Assembly: GCA_000708835.1 (NCBI GenBank)
Contig: DF237679.1
Span: 1-39,268 of the forward strand
DNA length: 39,268 bases
From: Klebsormidium nitens
Lineage: Eukaryota; Plantae; Klebsormidiophyceae
Direction of reading: 5' to 3'
Both the position numbers and the translations under genes were made by a program. A model generated the notes under the pieces. The model was not told where the DNA came from. It worked only from the letters and a program-made list of their open reading frames with translations, and made no database searches. Below, piece after piece: positions 248 to 37,138 of the stretch (position 1 is the stretch's first letter; each line of letters begins with the position of its first letter).

Positions 248-443
248 GGTTTCGTTTTTGCTGGCTGCTTCGAAAGGCGCCCCTGCGCGCTAAAAGCTCT
301 TCTTCTTCCTCCCAACTTATGAAGAGCTGAGTCTTCGCTTCTCTGCGGTCGAAATGGAGCTTCAATCCGACGCAGTTCGAATCGAGGAGCACCGTCGATT
401 TCAGTTCAAGTTTCGGTGACCAATGCGTGAGTATTCCTCTAAC
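248..443. repeat. Split direct repeat A2 (196 bp)
   Basis: GGTTTCGTTTTTGCTGG...GTATTCCTCTAAC, identical by eye to 7581-7776. Confidence 0.95.
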
Positions 444-564
444 TGTTTACAAAGGAACACTATCGACTAGATGTATCATCGAATCATCCTCCAGCCAATT
501 CATCCACAACCACAGTCGATCTTAATGTTGGGCGCGCCGGCCGCCGGCCGCTCCAAAGTCGCCC
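444..564. repeat. Probable repeat B1; partner B2 truncated by the window edge
   Basis: 552-564 TCCAAAGTCGCCC equals window bases 1-13; only these 13 nt of the partner are visible. Confidence 0.55.
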
Positions 565-600: not shown

Positions 601-1728
601 GTGGTTTGGCCGTGTAGGGAGTTGGACGAGTTTGCTAAGCGAACCTGGAAGAGAGCACGAGGTGTGATGGGGCCCAGCAACGTGACCAACGTATTGAATC
701 GTGAAGAGGTCACAATGTTCTATGAACGAGCTTTGGAAGAAGCTGGGGAGATTGCAAACCAAAGTACAAGCAAGGGTTTCGAAGATGGCCGAAGGAAGAC
801 TTGGTGGGAATTCAGCGAGTTTATGCAGCGAATGGGTAAACAAGCAGCTGATGCAACGGGCTTAGATGTAGTCGTGTTCATACACGGTGATTGGATACCT
901 CGTCATCGAGAGAAGTGTAGGACTGTGAGTCCTGATGACGGTCAGAAAGTGGCCTCCAGCTCAGCAGTGAAAGGGGTGATTACGCATCTCAGCAAGAATT
1001 TCGCCTTGCTAGGCCGGTCTGGTAACGAGAATCCTACGCAGTCCGAAGCTGTGCGGAGCTTTCATGACGGCTACAGAAACTGGTTGCACAGCAAAGGAGT
1101 ACGGGAGCGACGTGCAGTGGTCGTCTCAGAAGGGAAAGTTCAAGATCTGGTGGCTAGCATCGAATCCCAAATAGCTAGCAGTCACGGCGTCCAAGAATGT
1201 TGTTTGCTGGGTGATCTGACTGCGACTTTGTATCTTTGGGCATCCTGGGCGCGTGGCAAGGAGTGTGGCGATCTAGAACGACGACAAATCTCATTCGAAG
1301 AAGGACTTTCTCGGCCGGGCTGGAACAAGACGACTCGTTTCGAGCCGAGTGCAGAGATTTCGGTGGACAGCCAATTTCTAGAGGCTGCCGGCAGGCTCAT
1401 TCGCTCCTGTGAAGAGTACGGCGATCCAATTGGGCAGGGCTTCTTACTCCGGCCCTTGAACGAGCGGCGGAATGGCTTTAAGAAGGAAGCCATGAGCAGC
1501 GGCACCTTACGCCGGCGCATCCAGCAGCGGTTGAAGGACGCAAGCTTATTCGAGGGAGAAACGCTACATAGTTTCAGACGGTCGGCAGTACAACACGCCG
1601 CAGAGATAGAGGGGTACGATGTGGAAAAGCTCATGAAGAGGGGGCGGTGGTCATCATATGCAGCGTTCCGGCTATACATAGAAGAGATCGAGCACCGGTT
1701 TCCGAGGCGGAGAAGGATCGGACATTAG
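601..1728 (+). CDS. Tyrosine recombinase of the retroelement (start uncertain; first in-frame ATG at 667)
   Basis: Catalytic set R (SWARGKE), HxxR (LHSFRRS), W (GRWSS), Y (FRLYIE). Confidence 0.92.
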   Translation: MVWPCRELDEFAKRTWKRARGVMGPSNVTNVLNREEVTMFYERALEEAGEIANQSTSKGFEDGRRKTWWEFSEFMQRMGKQAADATGLDVVVFIHGDWIPRHREKCRTVSPDDGQKVASSSAVKGVITHLSKNFALLGRSGNENPTQSEAVRSFHDGYRNWLHSKGVRERRAVVVSEGKVQDLVASIESQIASSHGVQECCLLGDLTATLYLWASWARGKECGDLERRQISFEEGLSRPGWNKTTRFEPSAEISVDSQFLEAAGRLIRSCEEYGDPIGQGFLLRPLNERRNGFKKEAMSSGTLRRRIQQRLKDASLFEGETLHSFRRSAVQHAAEIEGYDVEKLMKRGRWSSYAAFRLYIEEIEHRFPRRRRIGH

Positions 1729-1916: not shown

Positions 1917-4460
1917 TTAAGTCTTGTGCCATTGGATGCTGTAAACTGCCAAGCCTAAGAAAGCAGGATTAAGTGTTCCGTTAGGAACTCTGAGGCTTGG
2001 TAAGCAGCTGGCCGCTGATTTCGGAATCAGTATCGGCCCTTCCACTCGAGCTCCTTGTAGTCTCCCCAACACTATGTCTACCATTGATCCTTTTGGTGCC
2101 GGGACACAGACGAGTGCGTTAACCTTGAAGAGCTCTAGTCTTTTCAGGGCTTGAATCGCGAGGCCTGGCGGCGGGAAGGCCCAGGCCCACTCCCTTGGTT
2201 CGACGATCTCGTTCCAGTCTTGTGCATTGGCATGAACCGCCGTACACCCGGGACAGTAGTATTTGGTCACGAATCGCTTGGCTTTATGAAACTGACCCGA
2301 TGCGTACAGATCTATGTCAGGTTCGACTCCGAAAGTCTGCTTCACTAGTTGGAAGATTGGTTCCGTTAACGTCCAATCTCCTGGGTCTGGTTTGCGGGAG
2401 AGCGCGTCCGCCTGGGTTAATTCATTCCTCGGAACCCATCTCGCCCGGACGTCAAAGTCTCCTTCTGCGGCCGCCTCTAATAGCACTTTCAGGTTGGAGA
2501 CGATGAAAGGTTTGGAACTTCTGAACCCGTTGATGGCCCCGACCGCAGCTTGGTTATCCCCGGTTACCAGGATCGAAGTTCCTTTAACCTCTTCCGCTCT
2601 GTTTTCAGCAACCGTTTTGATGGCCTCCACGTATCCCATGATTTCTCGTTCTGTGCTAGAAGTTTTTGCTTGGTCAGCGGTGAACGTTCCAGCTATTGTG
2701 AGCCGCTCCCTTGATGGAGTTTCTGCATAACCCCCAAAACCGACCGCCGACGCGTCAACACAGATACGGATTTGAACCGGCCTAGGCCACCATCTTCTGC
2801 CATTGAACCGCTCTATGTTTTGCACCCAGAACGAGGCGGTCTCCTTCACGATCTCTGGCGTTGGGAAGTGCGAATCCCATCCTTCCTTTCCATTCAAAGC
2901 TTCGTAAAGCGCTCTGCTGTAGATCGCGACCGGCAAGACTGCCGGCGCCGCTGAGACCAAGATTCCTGCCGCTCTGGCTATAGCTCGGGACGTCGTGCTC
3001 GTTGAGGTTATCAATTCTTCCATGGCGTCCTTTATCTTCTGGATCTTCTTCGGGTGAAGCCTAAACTCTGTCAGGTTCGTGTCTACTATGAACCCGAGCC
3101 ACTTTGCCATCTGATCAGGTACCAGCTGACACTTTGGCAAACCGAAGAAAGCCCCCAGTGCTCCCATCAGCAGGACGGAGATGAGTATCTGTCTCTGCGC
3201 TCTAGCTTTGGACCTTGCTGCTGTGAATGAGTCGTCTATATACCCGAGACCGGTATTCTGCTTTTCCGGAGTTCCAACAACGGCTCTTGCATCACCTTTG
3301 TGAAGACGTAACAGGCTTGAGCGAAACCGAAACACAAAACTTTGTAGCAGAAGGTAACTCCCCCGACCTTGAAAGCGAAATACTTCCAATAGGCGGGATG
3401 GACCGGCACGTGAAAGTAGCCGGATTTCAGATCTGCAGTGCTGACGTAGCTCCCTTGGTCGGTGAAATTCAGAACGTCTCGAAGTTTCTCGTATTGGAAC
3501 GGGATGGAAGTCAGGAATAGATTCAGGTAGCGATCGTTGCATATCAGTCGGAGCTTCCCGGCTGAATCGACTACTCCCATTGGGCTCACTACCTCGGGTT
3601 CTCCCCACTCTCGTTTCCAGACTGCGATCGCTCCCGACCTGAGGTTCTTTTCGATCTCCCCCTTTGAGAATTCCCACTCACGGTAGAAGGAGGCATGGTT
3701 TGGGAATTCGATCCGGTGCGGTTTTCTTCCGGTTAGAAATTCGTGTAGATGCTCCGCCCCAATCAGCCTTCTGAGCATTTCTTCAACCACCTTCCGTTTT
3801 TCTGGTTTCGCTTTCGACACACCGCTAAACCTGGGCCTAAACCCATGTTTTAACCACCCCAAGACCATCCTCGCTGACTTTCTGCCCGTCTTTCTCAGTA
3901 ACTCGTCCCAGGCGGGCCAGAACGTTTGAAAACTTGCAGCTTCAAAGGCTTCATGGTTTGGGATCTTCTCCGGGAGATTCTTCAGTAATTCTTCTGTTTG
4001 GGTTTCTAATTCGGCGTCAGGATCATCCGGCTTAGACTGCATCACTTCCAGGAGTTCTTTGATTCTGTCTCGTTGATCTTGAGGATTGGGCGCGGAGCTT
4101 ACTCGTGTTTGGATCCGGATAGCCGTCTGGACCCAGCTGCGCACATGCTCCGGTTCCGTCTTCGTCCCGGTCAGCGGGTCCTGGCTCGTCTCTATCAGAT
4201 CTTCATCGTGTGCACCGTCTGGTTCTTCCGCCCCCGGATTTTCGTCATCCTCTTCTTCATCTGACTCAGACTTTTGTCCCGCTTCTAGTTTTCCACTCTT
4301 ACCCCTCTCCAATTCGCCCGTCTGTCTATCTGTCCGATAGTCCTTTTCCCGTTCTACTTCCGTTCCTTTCACCGACTCTAGGCCTATCTTCACCGTTTCC
4401 TTTTGCTCTGTTCTCTGCTCCTGTCTCTGTGGTTCATTTCTACTGTCTCTCTCCTTCTTT
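1917..4460 (-). CDS. pol: reverse transcriptase + RNase H + DIRS-type adenine methyltransferase-like domain, with a -1 frameshift at about 3243-3245
   Basis: RT motifs VVSPMGVV, KLRLICND, ADLKSGYFHV, VLCFGFAQA, then YIDD (3231-3242) in the next frame; RNase H ICVDAS, STEREIMG, VTGDN, ADALSR; MT DIDLYAS...WAFPPP. Frame is open back to a splice acceptor TTCTTTTGACAG ending at 4461. Confidence 0.9.
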
Positions 4461-4957
4461 CTGTCAAAAGAATAGATTATCTTATTTTAGATCCTATGAA
4501 TGCTTAAAGTTACTCAAACTACCACATTAAAATTCTGTCCTTTAAAACTTATGCACACTGGTCATGCGTTCCGCTAATAATCCATGTCTTTAACAGTTAT
4601 TCAGAGCATGAGCATGAAACTTCTTAGAACCTTCAATCATTCTAACACAGAATTCACGTTTTGGCAATCGACAAGATATTTAACGGTTATTTACAATTGC
4701 TCAAGAGAGTATGTACATGTATCTTTTCGTCATGTCCAGCCAGCGTCAGGTTACACCCAAAGGTCCCGACATCCAATCTACTTTCTACAAAAGTCTCGTC
4801 TTCGTATCTTCTAATTTTTCTAAACTCTTACTTCTTTCTGTTCCCTTCACTCTTATCTATTATGAAGAACTTTACTTAGCCTCTGTGTTCTTTCTACTTC
4901 CAGAAAAGAGCTATCAAACTTTGGCTCCAAAGTTTTCAGATCGCAATCGGCTCTTAC

Positions 4958-5089
4958 TCCTTCATTCTGGGGACAAACGGCGACTCCATCCTTGGTCCTG
5001 CGAACCTAGGTGGGAATCCGGCCCCGAACCCTCTGCCATACTGCGGCCTCCAGCCCCCCCTGCCAGCAGGCATCTGCATCAGGCCCATC
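4958..5089 (-). CDS. Predicted 132-nt internal exon linking gag to pol (MGLMQMPAGRGGWRPQYGRGFGAGFPPRFAGPRMESPFVPRMK)
   Basis: Acceptor TTATTTGCAG (ends 5090), donor GA|GTAAGA (4957); phase 2-2, no stops, frame matches both flanking exons. Confidence 0.6.
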
Positions 5090-5485
5090 CTGCAAATAAT
5101 TTCCACTGCCTGTGAGTTTATCAATTCCTTCGTTTTAAAACATTCTTCAATCTCCCAGTCGTTTCGTTAAGTCTTATCACTCGGTTAAAAATTCCGCTTC
5201 TCAGAAGTTTCATCCTTGTTTCGAATCAGCTTCTGGTTTGTGCTTTTACTCTAACCTCCTTCTGGGCTCTCTCGGCCCTTTCGCATGAGAGCAAGCTTCT
5301 TCGCTTGTCCAATTCGCCCTCTTGGCTTTTGACTAATCTACTGGAGCTCTCTTGGCTCTGGGCCACATGCCCCTTTTTTCAACTTTACTCCTGGCAAAGC
5401 GCCTTCCCTTCTTTCTCTAGTTCTGTTTCTCATAACTTCGTTTTATCAATTCTTCAGATTCTAACCTAGTCGCTTGGACACCTAC

Positions 5486-6737
5486 CTGTCCTTCTTGTTC
5501 GCCCATTCCGGATGCTTTGCCAGCACGTCCTTCTCTTTCACTCTCTTCTCCTGGAAGAACTCCATTATCTCCCTTTCCACCTTTTCTTCCTGTTCTTCCG
5601 TTGCTGACTCCCCCAGGACCTTAGCCTTACGTTGCGCGAATGCAGTCAAGTCTTCCCCGAGATACGACCCCACCTTGACTGACTCTGCTTTCAGGACCGT
5701 GCTAAGGTACCCTGCCAACGAAAGGGGCTGCTTCTGGGGCTTTGGTGCGGAATAGACCATCATCATTGCTTCTGCCTGGGCGAATAGCCCAGGCTCTGTG
5801 ACTGGATTGATCAGAGCTCCGAAGAGCCTCATTTGCGTTTGCATCGCGAGCTTGTTCTCGCGAACCTTTCCCTGCCGTTCCAGCTCAGCCAGCCTCGCTT
5901 CTATCTCTGTTGGTTGCTGCCCGACCTTATTTGCCCAAAAGTTACGTTCTGCATGTTCACAGGTGGGGGACCCATGAAACCGGGAGGAGCAAAAGGTGTG
6001 GCCTGAGGGATCCCTTCCTGCCCCACCCCCCCCGGTTGGCCCATCCCCTGCGGCTGGAACCTAGGCATGAATCCCGTCTGATTGTGTAGAGGTGGAGGCA
6101 TCGGGGGAAAACCCGGAACAAAGTTCCTTGGCATCTGCTGGGGAGTGAAAACCCCCACCGGCCTGTTCCCGGGCCATTCCGGGTGCCTTCTCCTACCCCC
6201 GTCGAAGAAAATTGGGGACCGTTCTCTGACTAAGCCTTCTTCTGGCTCTTTGTCCCAATCTCCCCCGAAGTCATCTGCAGGTGTCCTGAACCTCTGCGGC
6301 TCGCGCTCTCCAAAAGCCCTAGTGCCGGGCCTGCTCTGAGACCTGCCCCTGTCTTCTCTGCCTTTCGACCTGATTTCATTTTCCAGCTCCAGGTCTTCTT
6401 GCCCTCTCCCCGCTCTAGTTCTGCCCTGCTGGAGGAAAGGTTCGTCTTGCATACCATTTGCCCTGAGCAGCTGGATTAAGGGGTCTCCCTCCCTTCTGGA
6501 TCCTGCTCCAATCGATAACTCCTCAACCGGAACATCTGTGTACTTCTCCCCCGATTCTGCTTGGACCTCAAACTTCCCCGTGCTCTGGGATATGCTGATC
6601 ACTTTGACGAAGACTCTGGCGAGATCCCCTGATGGCCTGAATTTAAACCTGAGCCCTACGAAACTCTGCAGTCCAGCTAACTTGCTCAGATTTTCCACTA
6701 TCCTCCTCTCCTCTTCTACTCCCCTAGACTTATTCAT
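5486..6737 (-). CDS. gag-like region (Pro/Gly/Gln-rich plus coiled-coil) in two overlapping frames
   Basis: ORF 5901-6737 overlaps the -1 frame FWANKVGQQPTEIEARLAELERQGK...ANKKD, which ends at donor AG|GTAGGT (5485). Assigned by position; no recognisable motif. Confidence 0.6.
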
Positions 6738-6770
6738 CTCGCCGACCGGGTTCTATTCGCGAACTCAATT

Positions 6771-7556
6771 TCAGGAGCTGGCACTGTCAGACTGGCTCTT
6801 CTTCGCATTTCCCGGTTCCGACTCTTGGAAGACAATCGCTTCAGTTGCCTGATCGACAAACGAGACGGCGAGGCCCCTGAGCTGCCTGATGGAGAACCCC
6901 GAGCTCTCTGCCAGCACCTTCCAGTTGACTACTGCCTCGTAGTTCACTTGTTGCAACGTCCTTATCAGGTCGTGATCTTCTGCGGTGAGTCCGATTGCTT
7001 CTGAAGGTGCATCCCTCTTATCCACGAAACACTGCACTTTCGGAAGCCCTTCTCCTGAGATGTCTGCAGCCTTTCTCTTGAGCTTGAGATTCTCCGTCGC
7101 CAGCAGCTTCGCCAATTCTTCTGCCTTGTTTGCTCTCTGTTCTGCGAGTTCTGCCCTTTGCTCTGCTAAAGTTCTCGCGAGTCGATCTTTGAGCAGTTCC
7201 GAGATGTCTTGCACTTCCCCGATGACGTCGTACAGCTGTCCAAACTTCAGGAGTGACTCCAGGAAAAGATAGTCTGTGAATTTCGCTTTGTTCGTGCATG
7301 CATCTGCTGCGTATATTGCTGACTTGAGTCCCCTTCCGAACGTCGTCAGGAACTGCTCCGAATAGTATCTCTTGCCCACACACAGGAAAACTTGCTTCGG
7401 GAGCCACGAACTGAATTCTTGTCCGCTGTCCAATGCAGACTGATCCTTTCCTTGGTACGCCAGTCTCAGCGCGTCAAACGATGGAATATTCAGTGCCGCA
7501 GCCGGTACCCTGTGGCCCCCTGCCACTACGGCCCATTCCTGTGAGTTCATGCACAC
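6771..7556 (-). CDS. ORF1 of the retroelement (coiled-coil, function unknown)
   Basis: 261-aa ATG ORF starting 25 nt inside repeat A1; heptad-like LAEQRAELAEQRANKAEELAKLL. Confidence 0.65.
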   Translation of the reverse strand: MCMNSQEWAVVAGGHRVPAAALNIPSFDALRLAYQGKDQSALDSGQEFSSWLPKQVFLCVGKRYYSEQFLTTFGRGLKSAIYAADACTNKAKFTDYLFLESLLKFGQLYDVIGEVQDISELLKDRLARTLAEQRAELAEQRANKAEELAKLLATENLKLKRKAADISGEGLPKVQCFVDKRDAPSEAIGLTAEDHDLIRTLQQVNYEAVVNWKVLAESSGFSIRQLRGLAVSFVDQATEAIVFQESEPGNAKKSQSDSASS

Positions 7557-7580
7557 TATCTATACAATGCTGCCCAAATC

Positions 7581-7776
7581 GGTTTCGTTTTTGCTGGCTG
7601 CTTCGAAAGGCGCCCCTGCGCGCTAAAAGCTCTTCTTCTTCCTCCCAACTTATGAAGAGCTGAGTCTTCGCTTCTCTGCGGTCGAAATGGAGCTTCAATC
7701 CGACGCAGTTCGAATCGAGGAGCACCGTCGATTTCAGTTCAAGTTTCGGTGACCAATGCGTGAGTATTCCTCTAAC
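7581..7776. repeat. Split direct repeat A1 (196 bp), 5' terminus of the element
   Basis: Identical to 248-443; begins with GTT on the minus strand. Confidence 0.95.
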
Positions 7777-7968
7777 CAGGATTGTGTTCACCGGTACCTT
7801 CTAGAATCTACGGTATACCGTACATCATTATCATATCACAAGCCGTGACTCCGCCCGTGAGCTAGAGTCTCCTGCGGGCCTGCCACGTTCTTCGGCCTGC
7901 GGCCTGCCTACCCGAATCGGCCTGCAAGCTTCTAAGTTCTGGAGTCCTGATGGTCTCCTTTCAAACTT

Positions 7969-8058
7969 TACGCCGTAGCCAGTTCGGCCACAGGGGTCCT
8001 GACTCCTGACTCCTGACTCATTTCAATTATCCAAATACGCCGTAGCCAGTTCGGCCAC
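7969..8058. repeat. 23-bp direct repeat pair with an internal (CCTGACT)3 run
   Basis: TACGCCGTAGCCAGTTCGGCCAC at 7969-7991 and 8036-8058. Confidence 0.85.
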
Positions 8059-9141
8059 TAAGGCTTCTCATCCCCTTCTCATGGCACACAAATGTTGACT
8101 GAGTGCGTAAATCTTTTCCAGTGTAGTTCGCCATACACTACCCTATCAACTTTACCCGGCAAAGCCTTATCCACGACTTATCCACAGCCTGGTCAAGTTG
8201 AGAACAACTATAAGAGGATAAGAGGAGTATAAGTACGGCTGGTGGTAAATTCCAGAAACTTCGTTGAGAAGCATTGCAATCAGGACTTGGAGTGTTCGTG
8301 CGGTGTACTACGGACCTCTTAGGGTAGGTAGGCATAGGCTAGCCATTGGAAAGCAGTTGAGGAAAGACACACACTCATACATGTATGCCATGAGAAGCCT
8401 ATGCCCTGTTTGGCTTCGGCGAGAACAAAAAGAGACCATATTGTATGAGTCGGTTCGATGTCGGACCGGTTTTTGCGTCAAACGCTCAAACCTGGCCTGC
8501 TGCCAATGCGTTTCGATCGCACCGCTTAAACCTTTCAACCGTCCGATCGTCGTCAATGGAAGGCGACCCACGCTCGGCGAAGTCGAAACCTGATGGCAAA
8601 AGTTAGTGACCCAAACGGCTGTACCAAACGACGATACATGCAGGATCCAGTTAAACCACAGTGCTTTCGGTGCTTGTAAGTTGTCGAGACTATACTTTGA
8701 TTCACATGCAAGTTGGCGGTTTTGATTAAAATCAATCAAGGGTAGCGCACCCGGTGCCAAGGGAATCGCGCCCGGACACTATATATTTTCTCGTTACACA
8801 CGCCAGTGGTGGCCAGTCCGACCTAGTTGCGGTGCACGACTTAGATTGCAGGCTCACAAAGATTTCGTGTCTGTCCAAGCAAAAGACTTTCGAGCACAGA
8901 ATGGTGAAAAGTTCTACCTTCCGCAAAAGTATTTTCTCATGTACAACCTAAACAGGTATGGTCTATCTTGTTGAAAACAGAAGAAACCTTTGACTAACAG
9001 GGATGTGAAACCGTCGTGCGTGAATTTTATGGATGCTTGCGTCTTCAGATGAGGATCATTAGATTTAGCCGTAATCAAAGGACCAGTCCTCTGATAGACA
9101 GTCACGGACATCACGTAGAAGCTCGAGCACGAGACCATATA

Positions 9142-12100
9142 CTACAGCGACAACAGCTTCTTCCAATGGAGCCACCCCACGATCCCCACCACGCATGCGA
9201 CGCAGGCGGCCAGCGTGCTCCACATAACCCAAGGAAAATAGCGCGGGTCACTGTAGAAGCTGCACTGGACGTTCATGCCAAACACGCCGCCCACAATCAC
9301 GGCTATGCTGGCCGCTACCGTGCCAATCGTGATGAGGATCACCAGCAGCAGCAGCTGGTTCTGGTGGTCGTCCAGCCGGATGTTGATGTAGTCCTCAGTA
9401 TCCTCGATGTACTCCCGCAGCTGCAACATCAGCGCGGTGATGTCAGCTCAGGCGCCTTTTCCTTCCTGGAAATGAGAGGTGGCGCAATCCGATACATCTG
9501 GACCATCAGAAGCACAACCTAGTACAAACGGGACCCTAACGACGCGGCAGCCTTCCGCAGCACAGGCGCGGGTGCACATTGCGATTAGTCAGCACGACTA
9601 GCCAGGGGCAGCAGAAGCAAGACGACGCCCCTTTTCCCACCAGCTTCAAAGTACATTTTACCCTGTACCTTGGCGAGCTGTTTTCGATAAACGGCAACTG
9701 CGCCTGTCACGGTCGGTGGCTGCATCCAAATGCAGATTTCAGAGCCCTTTGCCATCCCCCGAACACCAGGCTAGCCATGCAAACCTCCTCCGGCGCGTGC
9801 TTGCAACTCACGGCGGAGAGCTTGTTGAGCGTGCCCTCGATCTGCGCGAAGTAGGCCTCCAGCAGCATCTCCAGCTCCTCCACGTCCTCGCCCTTGCCGC
9901 TCTTGCGCGTGCTCTTGCTGCTGCGGCTGCTGCGCGACACGCTGCTGCGGCTCGCGCGACTGCGGCTCCCGCTGCGGCTGCGGCTGCGGCTGCGGCCGCG
10001 CCGGAGGCTGCGCGCGCTGTGGCTGCTCAAGTGGCGCAGCAGGGGGCTCACCTGCCAGGCAAAGCGGGAGGGCAGATTGAGGAACTTTGATGATAGTAAC
10101 GATCCGTATTGTGTGAGGCCTGAGAGGAACCATCGTAAGACACACTACAGCCCGCAGTACCGTACCACAACGCACCTCGTCGTTTTCACGAACCCTATCC
10201 GTTCTCATGTACTGCTGCTCAGAATTGGTTTGAGGAGGGATGCACGAGGTGAGAACAAACGGTCTGCGAACATATCCTGGACCACCATGAGAACTAGCAA
10301 GAAGCAATCACCATTAGTGCTTCTCGGAAAGCACGTCCCCCAGTGTCTCTCAGAAGCTCCTTTTGTAGAAGAAAAGAGCACACCCGGAGGCTTGTCACAA
10401 AAAAAGATGCATCGATTCGGCATAAGCGGTGCGCGATGATATTGACCACTGGCAATGAACGGGTCTAAAGTGCCCAAACCTCCAGCGAAAACAGAAACCA
10501 ATCTCCATCGGTTTCTGCCTCTTCCGTGCCCCCAGAATAGGCACGACCTACGCAATTCCGACAAGTGCCACCTCTCACCTGATCATCTGCTTCGGTATGG
10601 CCCCCATCATGGCCCGCCGCACCCTCCGGCACACTGGGTCCCGCGCCTCTCTCTTGGCCCCCCTCTTGGGCCCCGCCCTTTTGCCCCCCAGGAATAGCTT
10701 CGTCCAGTTCCCCCCGTTGATTGAAGGTCAGCTCACGCATCAACCGCGGCCCCTCAGACGAGAATCCAACGTCGAGAATGTCTGGATGAACGGGGCCCAA
10801 TCGGGGGGTCGACCCTTCCGTAGGGGGGCGCTCAGATGGGCCGGGGTCCAGTGAGTTGAGGGGGGGGAGCGCGGGAGCGGAGCTGCTGGGGGGCGTTGGG
10901 TCCTCGGGGATCGCACTAGTGCTCGGTTGATGGGAGCCGAAGTTGCGGGGGGAAAGGTGTGGGGAGCTGCCGGCCATCACAGAGCTGGAGTGAAAAGCAG
11001 CATGTTCAATAACGGCAGAGACCATCAGAAGCGGGTTCTGAGACAGGGAACTGGTTAATATAGTAACGGTGAGCGGACAAACAACCTGAAGCATACAAAG
11101 ACACTCTCATATTGCCGGCACAGCAGCCACTCTCATATTGCCTGCACAGCAGGAGCGCCGAACGAAAAGGAAGAGCTTCGAAGGACGTCGGGGACTGCGC
11201 GACATGTTAGCCTGCAAGCGCTGCTGAAGTCCCCAATCGTTTTAGAGAAGCTGACAAAGAGACGCAAACAAAATCCGAGGGGGAACGGAAGAACTGACCC
11301 GAAGCCTCCACCAGCGGTGAGCGAGGACTGGGGCGAAGTTGGCTCCAGGGCTTCCATGAGCTTGTCAGTGAGGTACATTTCAAGCATATCGCCATCGTCG
11401 TCAAGCAGCCCCTCCAGCTCATCACGCACCTGCGAAGAAGGTCCGATCTTTCAGATACTCGCCGCTCGCACTAAAGGGCTTCGTTTCCGAAACTTTTATC
11501 CCAAAGCGGAACCATGTAGCCACCACAGAGGCCGAGCAGGTGACGAAGCTTGAAATCCACAAATTGCTGTGGGAGTTTCCTGTCAAAACTGGCGAAATGA
11601 GCAGTTCCACTCAAGGGGACGGTAAAACGATCGAAATCCATCCGTTAAAAGAGCCAGCAGCTTGATGCTTAAACCAAGACCTACACGAGTCTCTGATACT
11701 CATAGCCGTCTGACTTTCCTACAAACTTTCTTACAGCATCTTTCCTGCACCCACCTTTTGCACACGCACGCTGAGCCCCACGAGCCTGCTCTTGTAGCGC
11801 CGCACCCGCTCCAGATTCGCGCTGATGATCTTCACCGTCAGGTCATCAAGCGCAGGGTAAGCCTCTCGCTCTAGTTCCGCACTCTTCACATCCAGGTGCC
11901 CGCACACCGTCTCCAAAATCACCTCCAATGCCCGGAACTCAAACGGCAGCACCACCGGCGCAGTCATCCCCTGTCCCACGAACGTACCCCCACCGCCCCC
12001 ATCGCCTCCGTCCAGAAACAGCACCTGGCTGGTGCTGACTACTGGTGATGCGTGCCGCCCGTCGCTGTCAGGGCTGGGGAGACGCTGGTACGACTTCTTG

Positions 12101-13876
12101 CGCCCAAACATGCGGTCCCGAATGGCAGTGAATGGGGCCCAGACTGAAGCCTCCTTCTGGGGGGGTGTAGGGCGCTGCGCGCTGCGCGGCCGCTGTGGGG
12201 CGGGGCTGGCGCCTCGCGATCGAGCCGGGGGGCTTGCTCTTGGCAGGGGGGAGAGACTCCGCACCCGCTCGCGGTTGGCCTGCCTCTCGGGGCTGCCCTT
12301 GAGAAGGGGATCCCTCGCCGAGCGCCGGACGGGGCTCCAGCTGCGCCCCCGCAGGCTGTTCTCGCGCATCAGGTCGTGCCATCGCTGCTCCCTGCCGGGG
12401 GGTGCCTGCGCCCTCGGCGGCGACTTCGGCCGCTCCTTGGAAGCTCCACGCCCCAAAGGACTTTTCCCTCGGGCCCCCGGGCTGTCTTGCCGGCCAACCG
12501 CTGCCTGCGCCACTGCCTTTCTGCCGCTGCTCGGGAGAGGGCCCCGGGCAGTCAAACCGGGAGCTAATAGCAAGCTGTCAGCTTGCAAGGATTCCGTGGG
12601 GTGCTCGGAAAGGTTAGCGTTGGCAATTACTGGTGAGCCAGCAGGGTTAGGAGACATTGAGGGGGGCGGGCTGGAACGGGCGTAGTCGAGGGCAAGATGG
12701 TCCCGCAGGGAGGCAAGGCGGCGCTGCAGCTCCGCGACGAATAGCTGCACGTGCGGGTTCTGGTAGTTCTGAAGGAGGACCTGCAGACCAAAGCAGACTG
12801 ATCTCCATATGGTGGACTTAGCGGAGGCGCCGGTCAGAGTGCAGTCTTGGATCCAAAGCAGCAGCGTCATCCGTAGCATCTCTACAGGAAACAGCAACCG
12901 ATGACTCTGCTGCATGGCCATCTTTAAAGCGTATTTTAGTCTTTAAAGATGGCCATACAGCAGAGTCATCGGTTGCTGTTTCCTGTTGAGCATGTTGTCT
13001 TAAGGAAGTGCACGTCACTGTGTCCCCAGTCCCAGTATTGGTATGATTGAAAGCTCAAGAACCCCTCACATGCTCTCTTCCTCACGCAACTGAATAGTCC
13101 ACACCTGCCCTGGGTTCAGCAGCATAAAGCCTATTAAAGGGTTTCAACAAGCAATGCCCAGCATTCACCTCCTCAGCCGTGACGATGGCCTTGATGTGCT
13201 CAAGATTGATGACGATGGCCTTCTCTCGCCCCAGAATGGTGGACGGGTACACGAGCACAGGGTCCAAAATGCGCAGGTCGCGCGCGGGGATGGCACACCG
13301 CCGCATGATTGCATACTAAAGAACAAACGGACCAGGAACGGTTAGGATTGAGGAGTGTACTTCGGCTCTCTTGTGGCTCCACTGAAAAGAAGACAATTCC
13401 GCTGAACTTTTAGATTCGCTCATTGGGAGCTGCGAATTTTTCTAAGGACATTTGATCCAAACGGATTGCAATCCAAGAATGCTGTAACGTCATCAACCAC
13501 CAAGCACGTTCCTAGACCTCATTCAGACCAACTCTCTCTGCAACCAATGGCTGTTAGTCTAATCCCCAACCCTTCCCTACCAGAAAGGCGCTCTTCAATC
13601 TTTGCAAGCAGAGCTTACTTTGTCCGCCTCGATGATCTGTGTGGCCCCCGTGGGATCAATCCGCAGCCATGACCGCATGCCCAGCCCCCTAGGCTTGGCT
13701 GCTGCATCCCCTCCTCTTGCTGGGGAGGTTGCCCGTCCCCTCACTCTGTTTGGCGTGCCTGGGCGGCTGGAAGAGGACGGTCGTTCCTCAGCTTTCAGTC
13801 GCCTCCCCAGAGGACTGGGAGACGGCTGCCGAGCTACAGCAGCGTCTCCTCGTTTGGCAGAGCCTGGCTTATGCAT
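9142..13876 (-). CDS. MRS2: MRS2/CorA-family magnesium transporter; exons 13876-13619, 13315-13169, 12780-11755, 11429-11299, 10984-10579, 10051-9812, 9420-9142
   Basis: [68 protein letters not shown], then TM-GMN-TM; all GT-AG junctions phase-consistent. Confidence 0.93.
12884..12986 (-). repeat. 46-bp inverted repeat with 11-nt loop in MRS2 intron 2
   Basis: Arms 12884-12929 and 12941-12986; single mismatch 12913/12957. Confidence 0.92.
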
Positions 13877-22140: not shown

Positions 22141-25100
22141 CTATGATAAGATGGTCCATGATAGACGGGGTCTGCAGAGGCAAACAACCACACTGTATAT
22201 CTTGAAACCTCCGTACTGCCGAAAGAGTAAGTCACACCTTTCTATTCCAATCTGATACTCCTTTCCCCCGGTTGCAATTCCTGCACCTTCCTTATCCCAA
22301 GTGTTTTTTACGGGGGCTGTTACGCGGCGGCCACTCAACCGGATCTCTCTAAGTTGGCTTAGAGCACCACTTGCACCATACAAGCCTCGGAGCATCTCCG
22401 CAGTAAAGTCCGCGACGCAGATGCCTCGCACCTCGGAGAGTCTTTCGCGAACGCCCGGCGGCGGCTCTGCTGACTGCGTCCACCGATTGTCGCCGTCTTT
22501 CCAGTTTTTTAAACCCGCACCTCCACCTCCACCTCCGGTCTTCCTCGCCGGTGCTGTGGTTGGGGGCGGCGTCGGCGGACGGGTTGTGGGCGGTGGGGTT
22601 GCGAGAGCGGTCTTCCTGAGCATGGCAACCCTGGTGTTTGCGTTTTCGGGTCCCAGGGTGCTCTTCAGGTAGCAGCAGTCGTGGTCGGCGCAGTGCGCGA
22701 TGCCGACGCACGCGGCCTCGTTGTCGCAGCGCGCGATGCACGCGCCGATGCTCTCGACGGTGGCAACGTCCCCGCACAAGGCAGCGTTGGTGGGGGCGCC
22801 CGCCGACGGGAAGATGTCGTTACCCGGATTATCCTGCGGAGAGAGACTCAGTGGCCAAAGACCGGTGGGCCGGCCTGAATTACAGGGACTCCTCAGACAA
22901 CGTCGTAGTTCCAAACCTTACTTCTATATTCTCCGAGCTCAAGAGCTGTTGGAGAGTATTGGATGGGAACGCGCGGTGGGATTTAGACCCTGACATCAAC
23001 GGGCGACGTGACCGGATCCCAAAGAGGAGCCTCGCCAGAGGCTAGATAAGGATCCATCGCCACATCGCGGATTTTTGAAAAGTTGGTAAGAAGGTCAGGA
23101 GTGCCGCCGGAAAGGCTTGTGCGGAGCCTGAGAGTGGGCTCAAAAGCTAGTGCATGCAGTCAAGTAGCTTGCACCCGCTGTCAAACAGAACTTGTGTTGT
23201 CGCCACCTTTGAGTTCTTCGACGCAAGCAGCTGAAACCTGGTCAGAATCTCATCGGTCTTGATTTAAGGTGGGTTCGAGGGCACTTCGAGGTCGTGGTTT
23301 CGAGGGGCACACACTTATCTTGAAACGGACCTACAAGCTGCACAGAGGTGAACTTACCTTCCCGTACGCGACGACGTATCCAGGTAAGCCTGCACGAAAG
23401 AGGATGAGCCGGAGAAGCGTTAATGAGGGACGTACTCTAGGTAGAGTACGTTACACCTTGGCAAGTCCACTATTCGCGTTTGTACCACGTAAAAGCATGC
23501 TGAAAGAGACTCGATCTGCTTTGCGAATGGGCTTCACGGCTTTGCACAGCACTGAGCATCGTTCCACTTCGTGCCACAAGACCGGGCTTCCAGAATCCAA
23601 ACGGGCCAACGACCAAATGACGCACCGCACAGGGACGTCTGGTCCGTATTGTTCACCGCCGCCAGCTAGGAGCTCACCCGTCTTCAGATGAGCGATGGTC
23701 CTTGTGTTGGCAGTCGGACTGTCCATTCTGCCCTTGAGGAAGCAGCAATTGACGTCAGCAACGTGGACGAACCCCGCACACCCGGCCGCAGCGTCGCAGC
23801 GCGTCTCGCAGGCGGGGGCATCCGTGTTGCTGTAAGTCAAATAGCCGCACGTGGGCGCATCCATCGGACCGTCTGAAGGGCGGATGTCGTTTAAGTAATA
23901 GTCCTGCACAGTCAAACAGCGGTTGAGTTCGCTAGTGCATGGTTGTCTTTTCTCGAGTTCCAGCTGACAGGTGGCGTGACCAAACGCAGATGCATTAAGT
24001 CAGTGCCACGGTGCGTGGGGCTGAATCAATCTGTTCTTCATAAAACAGGGCATACTAACCGTCACTCTGCCAAGCTGACTGACAGGACGAGAAGTGGGTG
24101 CCTTTCCAAGGCTGATAGAAACCTAGATACTCACGCGTTCTGTTACGGCCGTCTTAAAAGGGGACAATCTGGAACTCAAGATTGCGAGTTGGACAGACCC
24201 AATCCCTTCTCAGCCCACACCCTCTTACAGACCTGACACAACACCTTGAGAATCTTCGAGCACTCAGTGTGTACGCTGGTCGATCCAACCAAAGAAAGCG
24301 ATTAGCAATCATCACCACGTCAATCTCAAGGCGATGATTGAACCTTTTCCATCTGACAGCAGATCTTATTGACTGGCACAATCCTGTTCAACTAACAGCA
24401 AATACACTTTGCCCTCCGACATGCGATGCCCCTCGATTGACTCACCGCGTTTGGTTGCACAATGTATGTGTATGGTAGAGTGGGGGCGGTGGGTCCCGGA
24501 TAGTCTGCACGAAAAGGGATGATCCGGAAAAGCTTCAGAGAGAGGCGTTTACATCCCAGCTTCTGATCAGCTGAAATGCGAATCTACTGTCGAGCTACAA
24601 AGCTGCCTGGCAAGTTCACCTAGCGCATTTGGCGGCATATAACATTCTCCAGGCCTCTCTCTAGAGCATCCAGCCTTCAGAGCCTCTTTGCACAGCAGCC
24701 TCATCCCACCAGTGACTTGCATACATATTTACCTGTGCATGACTCGGATTCAACTCTCAAACAGGTAGTGAACAAAAGGCATGCGGCGCACAGGCTCACA
24801 GAGATTGTTCATCACTGCTGACGGTTCTTGTGTTAGCACTTGGACTCTCCAATCTGCTTTTCAGGAAGCCGCAATTGACATCAGCGTCGTGCACAAACCC
24901 CCCACATGCGTCGGCGGCGTTGCAACGCGTCTCGCAGTCTGAGGCGCTTGTGGCGCCGTAGGCTACATAGCTTCACCGGACCGTCCGTAGGGAGGATGTC
25001 GTTGCCGGGGAAATCCTGCAGCAAAAAAAGTCAGGTTAGCAGCACTTGAGCCCGCTGGTACAATATGTATCTTTTCTTGAACCCCACCAAACCTCAGGCA

Positions 25101-25481
25101 GGCGCAGCTGTAGCAGTGCCATTGACCATTGGGGTCACTAGTCCTTGAGTTCGAGCCCTTGCTGACCGTCACTATCCACTTATATATGTAGGCCAGGCGG
25201 AGCTGACAATGGTAATCAAGCAGATATCCAACAGATTGATGCAGGTAAAACCCAGGTCAAAGTTGGCTAGCTGCGTGTTCCGCCTCGGTCTCAGCCATGT
25301 TCATGCGCTGCCTCACGCAACGTGACTCACCGTGACCGATTGCACCGTGTCCTGCTGTGCTGCCACGTGGCCCATCATCATTGCAGGAATGAGCAGGAGG
25401 GCAATTAGGACCTTGCCATGAGCAACTAGTGCGGCAGCAGGCTCCCCGCGATGCAATTAAGGAGGGCGCTGTCGGCGCCAT
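22141..25481 (-). pseudogene. Degenerate paralog of the PAN/Apple-repeat secreted protein; exons 25481-25331, 25015-~24800, 24504-24446, 23903-23678, 23389-23358, 22833-22141
   Basis: Exon-for-exon homology to 27060-31641; exon 1 signal peptide is out of frame with its ATG; exon 2 has a net -11 nt deletion and a CC to CG change. Confidence 0.75.
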
Positions 25482-27059
25482 GATGACTTGCTGGTGGAGA
25501 ATTGCTGGCGAGCTGGTTGATTCGGTTGGGGGGCTCAGATCTGGAGGAGTACTAGGGGAGGGGAGGATCAGCAATGAGGGTACAACAAGTAAAAACGACT
25601 CGGAATTTTGCCGGCATGGAGACACGCGACTGTTGAACTTGAGAGCAAAGGTGGAGCTAGCAGCTAGGAAAAGTCCAGATCGGTGTGACTACAGGCAACA
25701 TTTGCAATATCATCTTAACAGCAGCAGCTTCCTGGCAGCTATTCATATCTACTTTGAGAGGGCATCTGCCTCTAAGAGCATGGAATGCAGACCAAGTAGC
25801 CTCAGGTAGGTTACAGGTATGTGGAGGCGTGCGTGAAGCATTCAACCGCAATGGTTGATCGCTCCCGTTTCTTCTACCTATGTAGCTACACGACACCGCA
25901 TGAAATAAAGAAGCCGCCGCTGAGCCGTTATGTCGTGTATAATGCACTACCTTGTTACCATAAGGGCCGCCGCGGCCGGCGTACCGCGGCCGCCGCGTAC
26001 TGGGTGATACGCATCCCTTCTTCCCAGCCTTCAGGCATTTTTCTTGACACTCTTGATTGGTCTTGCCTTCTCTTCAAGGATGGGTTGAGTACTTTAGTGT
26101 CAACGATGTACTGACAGTGAACTTACTAAGGCAGGGGGCGGCACCCGGCGGCCGCCCCACCAAAACGACTCTGAGTCAACTCCGGCTAGTAATCCCATGC
26201 AGGAGCATTTACTTTACTGCATAATGCATTGCAGTCCAGGGTAGCGGCGACTTTCTGAAGCCAAGCGCGGCGCCGGCGGCAGGGGGAGTCCCCAGAGTGA
26301 TCTGGACAGGTTGAATTCAGCTTGCAGCTTGGAGGTTGCACAGGCGGCTTTGCACCCTCTTTGCACTGCATGATGGACTCCATTCTTATAGAGTGAGACT
26401 GCAAGCTGTAACTAGAAAAGGCCGAACCCAAAATGTTCCTGGGGCCTGAGTACGAGGTAGGGCCGCGGTGTAGGTACAGTGAATGGTTAGTCGAGTCTTG
26501 CACTAGCCTAGAATGGGTGCATAATACATGAGCCGCTACAGCGGTCCAGCGGCGTGTTTCTCGCGGGGATCTTCCTCACAAACAGGATCTCTTTGAGCTC
26601 AATAAATGCAGCATGCTCAATAAATGCAGCATGCAGAACTAGGAAACCAGCGCGCTGACAGACTATATATACAGCCAGCCAGCTGCCAAACCATGAGCCT
26701 GTCGCTGACTTCGTAGCTGTAGACTGTATATCTGCCCCACGTCTCACAATGGCGCTGATCAGGCCAGGGAGCAGAATCGGAACCTCCGAGTGCGCCCTAA
26801 GTCGACGACAACCTCCCAAAGTAACTGGCCTTAATATTAATGTGGCACTATTCGACTGGTCACATTGGACAGGACACCAAACCTCAGCTAACCTCGATAT
26901 CGCTCATAGATTTCTCCTGATTAGTCACGAAACAGCGCTGAGGTCTCGTTCCCTCAGGGGTCGTTTACACCTACAGTAGTCGCCTCTCGTTGCTGCATGC
27001 CTCAAGCTGATTGATATCAGCTTCTCGGCATTCACTCTGAGCAGCCGCAAGTCGTCAAC

Positions 27060-30000
27060 ATGGCGCCACGTACAAGTTCTTCCTCCTATTCGCAGCGCGA
27101 TATGGGGCCTGCTGCCACGGCCGCAGTCAGCATCCTCGCCTTCCTGCTCCTTCCCGTGGTGATGCTCGGCCACGTGGCTGCGCAACCGTACACATACACG
27201 GTGCAACCAAACACGGTGAGTCACGCGGCATGAGGCACTCGCATGTGAAGGGCAATGCGGTATCTGTCGTGCAATCAGCTCTGTGCTTGAAGGTTCTCAA
27301 CTTAGCCTATGTTGTATCAGGTGTTAGCGTCTTGGCCCTGTTCTTGCACTGAGAGAGACCTGTCACCTAATTGGGGGCTTGTGTATCAATGATTGAGTTT
27401 TGCACGTTGGCAAGCTGCAGTATAAGTCCTCATCTCCTTAGCTTCCTAGTCTCTTGATACTTCTTAATATAAGTGACTGCCGTAGCGGGGCACTTGAGTA
27501 GATAGTATTGGCCCTCAAAAATAATTTGCGTCCGACTCGTGCCTTCTTGTGGGTTCGAGGCCCAGCAGTTGGGCATACCGCAACAAACAGCAATTCCTTG
27601 TAACCTGATGAAATCTGGCTTCAGCCCAAACAATACATGGCACTGGGCCCGTTTCTGCATCTGCATCTGGTCGCGCAAACCGCAACTTTTGAATTAAAAG
27701 AGAGATACATTATGCACTAGCGAGCTCATCAGCCGCCGGCTAGTGAGCTTTCGATTGATGTGCAGAATTACCCCTTCAATGACATCCGCCCTTCAGACGG
27801 TCCAGTGAATGCTCCTGCGTGCGGCAATTTGGCTTACGGCGACACGAGCCCCACCGCCTGCGAGACGCGCTGCAACGCCGCCGACGCGTGCGTGGGGTTC
27901 GTCCACGTTGCTGACGTCAATTGCTGCTTTTTGAAGAGCAAGCTGGAGGGTCAGAATGCTAACCCGAGTTGCGTCACCCATCTGAAGACAGGTGAGCTCT
28001 CACACTGTAAAATGCTAGCGGAAGTGGGCAGATCGAGCTGTGAGCTTGTGCGGTTAGTCAAACGTTTCTGGTCGCTGATCATTCATGAAATCTTAATAAT
28101 GCACAGGTAGTGGCAGTGACGTGTAGGCAATCTACACAGGGAGAAACGGCTTTTCCCCGGGGTCGGGGAAAGCCCGGGCTGTTCCCGGGGAAGGCCTTTT
28201 CCCGGCAATTTCCCCGGGGATGGTCATGTCCGAGGAATTCGTCAGATCCCCGGGGTCCTCCCCGGTGACCGGGGAAGCAAGTCCGGGGAAACGAACCCCG
28301 GGGAAGGAAGGCAAATCAAAAAAGCTCCCCCACACCAGGATAAGATATTTTCGAGTTGTCCAGCGTGTAGGCAGACCGTATGCTGTCAGTAGGAAGCGTC
28401 TTGAATGAGAGAAAAGCAAAAAAGAGGGAGAAAGGATCTGCTGTCGTTGCTGGGGTTCGAACTCGTGCCCTTGGCCACCGGGTGACGTTACCTGATGTCG
28501 AGCACCTTAAANNNNNNNNNNNNNNNNNNNNTGAAACTAGCGTACCTTGAGTTGATCTGAAAATATCATGTACGGATCAGTTACACCCTTAAGCATACAC
28601 AGCGCAGGTACTGCTTATCCTCGAGCCTGTTCTGCATTCAAACAGTCGTTGCAGATTCGAAAGGTACCGTCACACAAATGCGTGCCTCGCGTGTCGGTCG
28701 CTCAAGGCCTGTCAAAGAACGAACTCGGTCTTTACGCTGCATCCCCGTTTCGAAAGCGCAATGTAATTCGACCCCTTGAGAATTTGAATTTCTTGAAGAA
28801 CAGCCGTTACTAGGTCAACCTCGCCTTGACCCTTGCGTATTAATACTTCTTTACGAACACTTTCACTTATAAGTGTTGTTAGGTATAGAGATGTATTCCT
28901 TGGAATTTGGCTAAGTGTCTGTCTTCCCCGGACATGAAAGGCAATTCCCCGGGGTTCACTTCCTTCCCCGGGTTTTCGATGGCCGGGGAAGACTTGAACG
29001 GTCTTTCCCCGGTCACAACCCCGGGGAGTCTATCCCGGGGAAGCCGGATCACGTCTCCCCGGCTTTTCCCAGGGGTGAGTCCGGGCAATCTCCGGTCTCT
29101 ACCTCCGGGGAAAAGCCAATTCTCCCTGTGCTAGTGGTGAGGCGACGGTGCTGTGCAAAGCGATGAAGGCTGGCTGCACAGGAGAGTGTCCTTGAGCATG
29201 CCTTTTTTTCATGGAACAATGTGCATGGGTGAACTTGCCAGGCAGCTTGGTAGTTTGATAGTGGATTCGCATCTCTGCTGTTTAGAAGCTGTAACGTAAG
29301 GCCTCTTTCTGAAGCCTCATCCAAAAGTGTGCAGGCTCCCCTGGAAACGTCGTGGCCACACTACCGTACACATACACGGTGCAAACAAACACGGTGAGTC
29401 GAGCGATGGGTAGCGCCTTTTGAAGGGCAAGGTAGGTGTTAAACCTGTTGAATTCAGGTCGTCAATAACGGTTGGGCCATCACATCAAGTTTGGTGTGGC
29501 TCTTATCACTTCCTTTGCGGAATTAAGCAGAAGACGTGGGTGCTCAAGAATCAGTTGCTACGATCAACCAGCAGATCATCTCCGTGCTTGAAGGCTAGGT
29601 TCAGAGTAATATGCCAGGTCAGCAAGAGGTCCTTGACTAAGCAGGATCAAAGTCTGTCCCCCTGGGCAGTCTGTGTTCGCTATTCAATCTTGCTTGGAAT
29701 TTTGCAGTAAGTTTCTCGTCAGCCGGGCCCCTTTCTACCGTACAAGCACGCTTGAGCGCCATGGTAATTAATGGCCTAGTTGGAAAGGCACCCAGTATCT
29801 GTTGCTTTGATGTGAGTCGGCTTGGCGTAGTGGCGGTTAGCAGCTCTTGTGTACTCGTAAAGAAATCATGCTTCAGCCCCATCACCATGCATCACGGCTG
29901 CATCTGCGTCTCGTCACGCAAGCTAAGCTGAAAGTTGGAAAGACCACCGCGCTCATGTGCGGTTTGTGCACAGAACTACTGGGCAACGACATACACCCTT

Positions 30001-36200: not shown

Positions 36201-37138
36201 ATTTTAAGGTCTCGTGACAGACTGCCGATGCTTCATACTACAGAAACAACAAGAACTGCCAGGCTGGTGAAAACGTGATGACATTTGCGAGAGGGAACGT
36301 CTGGCGACATTTGGCTGAGCGATTGAAAGAGCGCCTCTGAGTTTGTCAGCTCAGACATACTAAGGTTACCACTGTGCATTATTGACATTCGTGTGGCAAA
36401 CCGTCTCACCACGCCACCTCCCTCCTTCTTCACACCTTTGTGAATCGCACTCCTAATTGGAAGTTGGAACTTTTGTTTCTCACCTGTTCCTTTGTCACCC
36501 TCTAGGAAGTTGTACCCCAAATCCACCGCCTCGAGCCCCGCACAGTGCTGCCCGATCGCAGCGAGGGCCTCGTCCGAGGTGCGGAAGCACCCCCCCTCCA
36601 GGGTCCGCGCCACTTTCAGCGAGGTCAGCCCTGGCAGAAGGCTCAGCAGGCTGCCGAGCTTCTCAGGGTCGCACTGCGGCAGGAGAAAGACCGAGCGGCT
36701 GCCAACCAGGATCTCCTTCCACTTGCGGCACACCGAGGCGATCACTTTCGAGCTCCCCCCCCCGGCCTTCTCAAAGATGGCCGCCAGGCACTCCTCCGGC
36801 AGCTGGTTGATCAAGTCCCCGCCCTGAGCCCCCACCCCGCCCGCCCTCACGTTCTTGCCCTTCCAGGACCCCCGCGCACCGGCCCGGCGGCCCCCCGCAA
36901 GGGGCGAAGAGCGAGATGACAGCACTAGTTGGTTTCGCAGCTCCGGCTCGCACTCACTTGCCGGGGGATCGCTCAGTTGGAGGGACCCTAACTCAAACTC
37001 TGCATGCTCCTTGTCTGATTCACCATCGTCTGCAAAGCGAGTCTTCCTGCGCCGCAGGGTGAAACAGCCCAGCCTGGAATGCCGTTCTGAGTGATCCCCC
37101 GCCGCTGCCGCCTCATCTCGGGACTGCCGAACCCCCAT
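33268..37138 (-). CDS. F-box/LRR-repeat protein (FBXL/RNI-like); exons 37138-36484, 36148-35301, 34836-34606, 34050-33268
   Basis: F-box LINQLPEECLAAIFEKA...VCRKWKEI; many LxxLxLxxCxxxTD repeats (LRRLDLTGCKNVSD, LAWLNLSGCDKVTG, LTTLDLSGSSGWSD); phases 1,0,0 consistent. Confidence 0.88.

Follow-up and report, generated by a model that had tools for sequence, protein, structure and literature searches.

Retroelements are expected to lose introns because their copying goes through RNA, and in most of them the Gag:Pol ratio is set by frameshifting or readthrough. Splice-dependent production of Gag-Pol has, to our knowledge, been experimentally shown only for Ogre, an LTR element. Ogre, which belongs to the Tat lineage of Ty3/gypsy elements and is found in legumes, carries an intron between the GAG-PROT open reading frame (ORF) and the one for RT-RH-INT (PMC6317226). 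This is the closest mechanism to the one that we propose here for an element of the alga Klebsormidium nitens, since in both cases an intron lies between a structural ORF and the RT ORF. However, Ogre has LTRs, a DDE integrase, a single intron and no cassette exon, and its splicing has been demonstrated by experiment, whereas the K. nitens element, for which splicing is predicted from sequence, has a tyrosine recombinase, putative split direct repeats and two putative introns around an apparently translated exon, with both splice donors doubling as stop codons.

In the Ty1/copia elements copia, BARE1 and EVADE, alternative splicing sets the Gag:Pol ratio and the unspliced RNA is the replication template (PMC3735527, PMC12786077). 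The logic of these elements is the reverse of the one proposed here: their splicing removes or disables pol for extra Gag, whereas in the K. nitens element the unspliced RNA would encode Gag and Pol would need splicing. Penelope-like elements, which the preliminary description of this locus had put forward as the precedent, do keep introns through retrotransposition, but the intron conserved in them sits over the promoter, in the 5' UTR (PMC8557442), and does not join two coding regions, and they differ further in belonging to another RT clade and in carrying a GIY-YIG endonuclease; the precedent therefore stands for intron retention but not for the joining of gag to pol, for which Ogre is the closer system.

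A likeness of another kind links the element to Kangaroo of Volvox carteri and the PAT group, with which it shares a tyrosine recombinase in inverted orientation and a Gag without a zinc finger and, putatively, a pol of the RT-RH-MT type and direct repeats of the split kind (PMC4157794), but its internal repeat occupies a different position relative to the recombinase than in the Kangaroo scheme. Neither of the two DIRS-order descriptions that we consulted (PMC3266345, PMC4157794) mentions introns between gag and pol, and the strings 'intron' and 'splic' are absent from the first, an overview of DIRS1-like elements.

Junctions between gag and pol

The gag and pol genes lie on the minus strand of contig DF237679.1 of K. 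nitens, within the window, by which we mean the whole stretch of 39,268 nt that was analysed. The C-terminal part of gag, which forms exon 1 (5486-5922), ends in ...AKHPEWANKKD plus the bases AG; its last base is 5486, and ...AAG AAG GAC AG is followed directly by GTAGGT. Donor 1 (GT at 5485-5484) gives AGG-TAG when read unspliced, which means that the gag stop codon is supplied by the GTAG of intron 1 itself. This intron (5090-5485; 396 nt, GTAGGT...GCAG, phase 2, 43% GC, 8-9 stops per frame) closes at acceptor 1, TTATTTGCAG, whose AG occupies 5091-5090. Exon 2 (5089-4958, minus strand) is an Arg/Gly-rich cassette of 132 nt with 64% GC and has zero stops in the frame demanded by the phase-2 junction. 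Donor 2, GGA/GTAAGA (the slash marking the junction; GT at 4957-4956), reads GAG-TAA when unspliced, and retention of intron 2 (4461-4957; 497 nt, GTAAGA...ACAG, phase 2, 36% GC, 14-16 stops per frame) accordingly places a stop directly after exon 2. Acceptor 2, TTCTTTTGACAG, has its AG at 4462-4461, and exon 3 (3236-4460, minus strand) starts at 4460 with an acidic linker that leads into the N-terminal half of RT (Pfam RVT_1, E=1.5e-8).

All four junctions of the window copy are in phase 2, and a local translation of exons 1-3 in order runs without a stop into the RT ORF, which ends at 3236. The exons were searched separately, and the joined reading was used only for this local frame check. 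The first Met of the pol frame comes 140 codons past acceptor 2, at window position 4042. Readthrough or frameshifting across the gag-pol spacer was considered and ruled out, given 8-16 stops in every frame of either intron and a pol that offers no Met for 140 codons. The donors (5485 and 4957), the acceptors (5090 and 4461), the phase and the stop-free exon had all been given in the preliminary description and were confirmed in every coordinate and motif, as were its observations that unspliced RNA stops at AGG-TAG and that pol has no ATG of its own near its start.

Gene order, repeats and classification of the element

At its 5' end the element carries the terminal direct repeat A1 (7581-7776, minus strand), whose 196 nt are 100% identical to 248-443. 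An upstream ORF of 261 aa (ORF1; 6771-7556, minus strand) follows, which ends in a TGA 34 nt before the gag ATG and shares the frame of gag, with stops between the two; a Pfam search with ORF1 returned no significant family. The middle of ORF1 is rich in Glu, Lys and Ala and probably forms a coiled coil, and ORFs upstream of gag also occur in relatives (126-1028 in L002 and 66-1052 in L010). The N-terminal part of gag (5901-6737, minus strand) starts with the ATG at 6737 and is broken in frame when compared with the continuous gag of relatives. Past exon 3, the rest of pol (1917-3245, minus strand) holds the YIDD motif of RT, an RNase H region and a putative Dam-like MT domain, its frame being shifted by one base at about 3245/3242.

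Convergent with gag-pol, and thus inverted relative to it, lies a tyrosine recombinase ORF of 375 aa (601-1728, plus strand), which has a Pfam Phage_integrase match (E=0.0053) that falls below the curated cut-off and a C-terminus with the motif ...HSFRR...Y...; the same gene order with an inverted recombinase is found in L001, L002 and L008. At the internal repeat junction (248-564, minus strand), repeat A2 (443-248) comes after a probable B1 (564-444). A stretch of 13 nt at 564-552 is found again, exactly, at 13-1, at the window edge; we infer a B assignment in which this short copy is probably the start of the split-repeat half B2, with the element's 3' end lying beyond the window. The recombinase ORF does not begin with an ATG. 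Immediately upstream of it comes the internal repeat junction, and at 52-330 there is an ORF that does open with an ATG. For a recombinase start exon placed upstream of that repeat and beginning at the ATG at 52, the candidate donors (donor-like sites at 112, 133 and 217, all phase 0) and acceptors (CAG at 598 and 677 and TAG at 617, phases 1, 2 and 2) gave no phase match.

According to the published description (PMC4157794), elements of the PAT/Kangaroo group carry an MT domain and split direct repeats in the arrangement A1 ... B1A2 ... B2, their recombinase is inverted and their Gag has no zinc finger. In the element we find the feature of the DIRS order, namely RT together with a tyrosine recombinase instead of a DDE integrase, and those of PAT/Kangaroo elements in the inverted recombinase and in a Gag without a zinc finger, the CCHC knuckle (CX2CX4HX4C) being absent from every gag ORF of the element. 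The C-terminal 187 aa of pol gave no Pfam match to Dam methyltransferase; in a feature search they resemble clusters carrying PF05869 Dam (scores 0.95-0.96), which we treat as a lead only. There was no Pfam match to an integrase or a protease in the element, and the features that mark membership of Ogre and Tat (LTRs, a DDE integrase and a protease in the polyprotein) were not found. As judged from these sequence features, the element is a PAT/Kangaroo-type tyrosine-recombinase retrotransposon of the DIRS order, in which the MT domain and the B repeats are only putative. The preliminary description had called it a YR retrotransposon, and the RVT_1 match and the tyrosine recombinase ORF, a gene that the relatives share, bear this out.

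Elsewhere in the window there is a large inverted duplication (22550-31433) with arms of 286 nt (22550-22835 and 31148-31433, 89% complementary) and additional pairs of arms. Enclosed in it are an N gap (28512-28531) and a 15-nt tandem array rich in Pro/Thr (31354-31595). On the minus strand there are also host-like ORFs: a weak MRS2-like segment of an Mg transporter (11731-12921), LRR_6/LRR_4 repeats (33268-34224, 35274-36143) and a weak F-box (36233-37138). These LRR, F-box and MRS2-like ORFs are probably exons of nuclear genes that flank the element.

Frame breaks in the window copy

Two proteins with a continuous gag, P0086 (401 aa) and P0087 (452 aa), align to the window in two frames (6737-6429 and 5922-5485), and two with a continuous pol, P0002 and P0004, cross 3245/3242 in two frames, which places a one-base shift just before the YIDD motif. 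The frame change within gag falls between 6429 and 5916. The relatives have continuous ORFs at both of these sites. Both breaks (gag, 5901-5960; RT, 3236-3250) adjoin short G runs. They could stem from mutation or from assembly error, and given these breaks in gag and RT the window copy may be inactive; its terminal repeats are nevertheless 100% identical.

Conservation of the junctions in relatives

The DNA of eleven related elements was compared, in which L009 duplicates L008, leaving ten distinct relatives from four data sets: Logan run SRR23617307 (L001, L003 and L010), two ENA assemblies (L002 and L011), the K. nitens assembly GCA_000708835.1 (L004 on DF237300.1, L005 on DF237548.1, and L006) and JGI 3300060284 (L007, L008 and L012). 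They have in common the order gag, spacer of 0.9-1.8 kb, pol and inverted recombinase, the last where the contig extends that far. At the protein level, the N-terminal ORF of pol has 84 homologues, the best of them 50-56% identical and K. nitens proteins included, while a search of the full library with the gag C-terminus gave 25 cluster representatives, of which nearly all stop where the window gag does in the alignment; for the gag C-terminal ORF of the window, a look-up of the exact protein returned zero records. The most distant relative with the same layout has a gag identity of ~28-34%. A pattern search for related loci built on a 6-sequence gag alignment yielded 139 pattern matches, none of which was confirmed, and a codon-degenerate DNA pattern for exon 2 had 0 matches in JGI metagenome contigs.

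Donor 1 overlaps the gag stop codon in 11/11 elements (the window copy and the ten relatives), a count that is taken over related elements and not over independent trials. Its form is ACAG/GTAG in the window and ACAG/GTGA, ACAG/GTAA, AAGG/GTGA, AGAG/GTGA or ACAA/GTAA in the relatives. Donor 2 takes forms such as GA/GTGAGT, GA/GTAAGG, AG/GTGATT and AA/GTAAGT in the relatives, and retention of intron 2 brings a stop right after exon 2 (GAG-TAA/TGA, AGG-TAA/TGA or AAG-TAA/TGA), again in all eleven elements. When the donors of the eleven elements are pooled, GT with R at +3 is seen in 22/22, A at +4 in 21/22, G at +5 in 15/22 and T at +6 in 12/22; the pooled acceptors are CAG in 20/20, and a CAG acceptor that opens the pol frame could be placed in nine elements. 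The termini fit the extended consensus of U2-type introns, GTRAGT at the donor and, at the acceptor, CAG behind a tract rich in pyrimidines.

Exon 2 measures 132, 129, 129, 165, 168, 147, 105, 126, 117, 90 and 104 nt in the eleven elements, a multiple of three in ten of them, the exception (104 nt) being L007, a visibly degenerate copy. The phase of the junctions is 2 throughout, apart from donor 1 of this same L007, which is one base off. Like that of the window, exon 2 of the relatives is free of stops and Arg/Gly-rich (90-168 nt), and in most elements it has no start codon. The introns range from 340 to 693 nt, and between nearest pairs they are only 37-46% identical in MAFFT alignments with gaps counted as differences, which is background, compared with 76-83% for the gag tail, 51-70% for exon 2 and 65-76% for RT. 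(MAFFT was chosen because a shuffled control reached similar identity when sequences were aligned globally in pairs under lenient gap penalties.)

The comparison of other copies that the preliminary description had proposed has therefore come out in its favour: splice signals and phase are kept in relatives whose introns have diverged to background identity. An uninterrupted gag-pol ORF, which it had named as the contrary sign, was found in none of the relatives examined, and no intron-free relative was found. That the junction parse exceeds chance is strongly supported, on the sequence comparison, by a layout common to ten relatives though the introns themselves are unalignable, and an anatomy of two conserved, predicted U2-type introns with a translated cassette exon between them is strongly supported likewise.

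Coding nature of exon 2

In both L001 and L003 this exon has a length of 129 nt, and the two versions differ at 10, 7 and 22 sites at codon positions 1, 2 and 3, respectively, of the splicing frame. In this frame 10 of 42 amino acids are changed, whereas the two remaining frames would have 24 and 22 changes. With a dN of 0.20 and a saturated dS, the exon is similar to the gag tail. The excess of third-position differences, together with the smallest number of amino-acid changes in the splicing frame, argues that exon 2 is translated, and in a frame that nothing but splicing to gag would provide. Codon-type conservation in the exons, which the preliminary description had suggested looking for, is in this way seen for exon 2 in the comparison of L001 with L003.

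Deposited gene models and RNA evidence

P0093 (KFL_003510150) and P0088, both deposited as K. nitens proteins, pass from the gag C-terminus through an Arg/Gly-rich exon into the pre-RT linker. Their genes span 1.7-2.2 kb and have three exons whose boundaries are the four junctions described above, with products of 285 and 444 aa. Augustus produced the K. nitens models, and assembled transcripts had been mapped onto the scaffolds (PMC4052687); P0093 and P0088 are predictions and may have been made without any transcript. When residues 30-180 of P0093 were used as a query for junction-crossing proteins, only the two K. nitens models and zero Logan-derived ORFs were returned. A further protein, P0096 (928 aa; L006, K. 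nitens DF236994.1, gene 6001-11439), also has gag and pol fused, but exon 2 and the tail of gag are read in it out of frame; it seems to be an artefact of annotating a frameshifted, degenerate element whose intron 1 contains an assembly gap.

Reads joining 5486^5089 and 4958^4460, which the preliminary description had expected RNA data to contain, were not found in four small runs whose RNA library type was guessed, and the three short contigs recovered contain zero joints. Two of these three, X1 (4781-5096) and X2 (4736-4993), run unspliced from exon 2 into intron 2, and they represent either intron retention or DNA. In the runs that gave X1 and X2, these are the only contigs on the whole stretch of 6 kb, and they cover exon 2 together with the first 177-222 nt of intron 2.

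Discussion

We consider it probable, from the conservation and coding pattern described above, that the 1-kb spacer consists of two genuine spliceosomal introns around a translated exon and that pol is made only as Gag-Pol from spliced RNA. According to this model, intron-retaining RNA would yield Gag only, because donor 1 itself forms a stop codon, and the same RNA would be the template of reverse transcription, because every genomic copy keeps both introns. Both introns would be removed from a fraction of the transcripts, which would bring gag, exon 2 and pol into one frame and give a Gag-(Arg/Gly)-Pol fusion; as pol has no start codon of its own, it would be made only as part of this fusion, from the spliced fraction. 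That the RNA of the family is spliced, and that this splicing is partial and regulatory in nature, we infer from these features, and by analogy with the known systems the efficiency of splicing may set the Gag:Pol ratio.

Of the other readings, coincidence in the decayed spacer of a dead copy is the one with next to no likelihood. The window copy does have two frame breaks, and a 1-kb AT-rich region offers 52 GT and 132 AG from which junctions might be picked by chance, but the same junction layout with an exon 2 of a multiple of three nucleotides recurs in the relatives (L007 excepted), a comparison that effectively refutes coincidence, and terminal repeats that are 100% identical do not fit a dead copy. 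We also think it very unlikely that pol is expressed alone, whether through a promoter or ribosome entry site located internally or through a non-AUG start near 4393, with the spacer acting as a non-coding regulatory region whose splice-like signals would not serve to join pol to gag. ORF callers do pick alternative start codons for pol in the relatives, and the zero junction reads are what such a pol would give; yet independent expression would leave unexplained an exon 2 of coding type that in most relatives lacks a start codon, the conserved phase-2 GTRAG and CAG signals in otherwise unalignable sequence, the opening of the pol frame exactly at a CAG acceptor in nine elements and the lack of a Met for 140 pol codons.

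A closer contender, which we nonetheless hold to be unlikely, accepts the introns and differs in the use of exon 2: the main productive splice would run from donor 1 to acceptor 2, with exon 2 either optional or included mainly in an mRNA that has lost intron 1 only and encodes Gag with an Arg/Gly tail, which would make three or four products in all. As all junctions are in phase 2, skipping of exon 2 would also be in frame. The stop that retained intron 2 places right after exon 2 in each of the eleven elements fits this arrangement, as do contigs X1 and X2, which join exon 2 to unspliced intron 2, and a basic tail could bind nucleic acid for a Gag that has no CCHC knuckle. The coding constraint on exon 2, however, shows that it is translated without telling in which isoform, and the K. 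nitens models place exon 2 in the fused reading. Removal of both introns, with exon 2 retained in the Gag-Pol fusion, is our preferred reading of the spacer.

A bolder version is less likely than not. Here the unspliced RNA would be both genome and Gag mRNA, the RNA spliced at intron 1 only would encode Gag with an Arg/Gly tail, and the doubly spliced RNA would encode Gag-Pol, which would make host splicing a graded three-way switch in an ancient YR lineage that extends at least as far as relatives of ~30% gag identity; the Arg/Gly-rich tail of Gag might serve as a nucleic-acid-binding stand-in for the missing zinc knuckle. If this were true, dedicated export and packaging of intron-containing RNA, as in retroviruses, would have evolved in a non-LTR, non-viral retroelement.

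The finding is also of practical use, as ORF callers and Augustus now split such elements into several 'hypothetical proteins', and recognition of the junctions allows gene models to be corrected. Conserved introns inside the coding region of a retroelement would mean that the element separates its spliced from its unspliced RNA and gains an advantage by it. The presence of two introns with a translated cassette exon, kept across a YR lineage, points to a convergent use of the spliceosome that would replace ribosomal frameshifting, and K. nitens may offer a tractable alga in which to study the nuclear export and packaging of an intron-retaining retroelement RNA.
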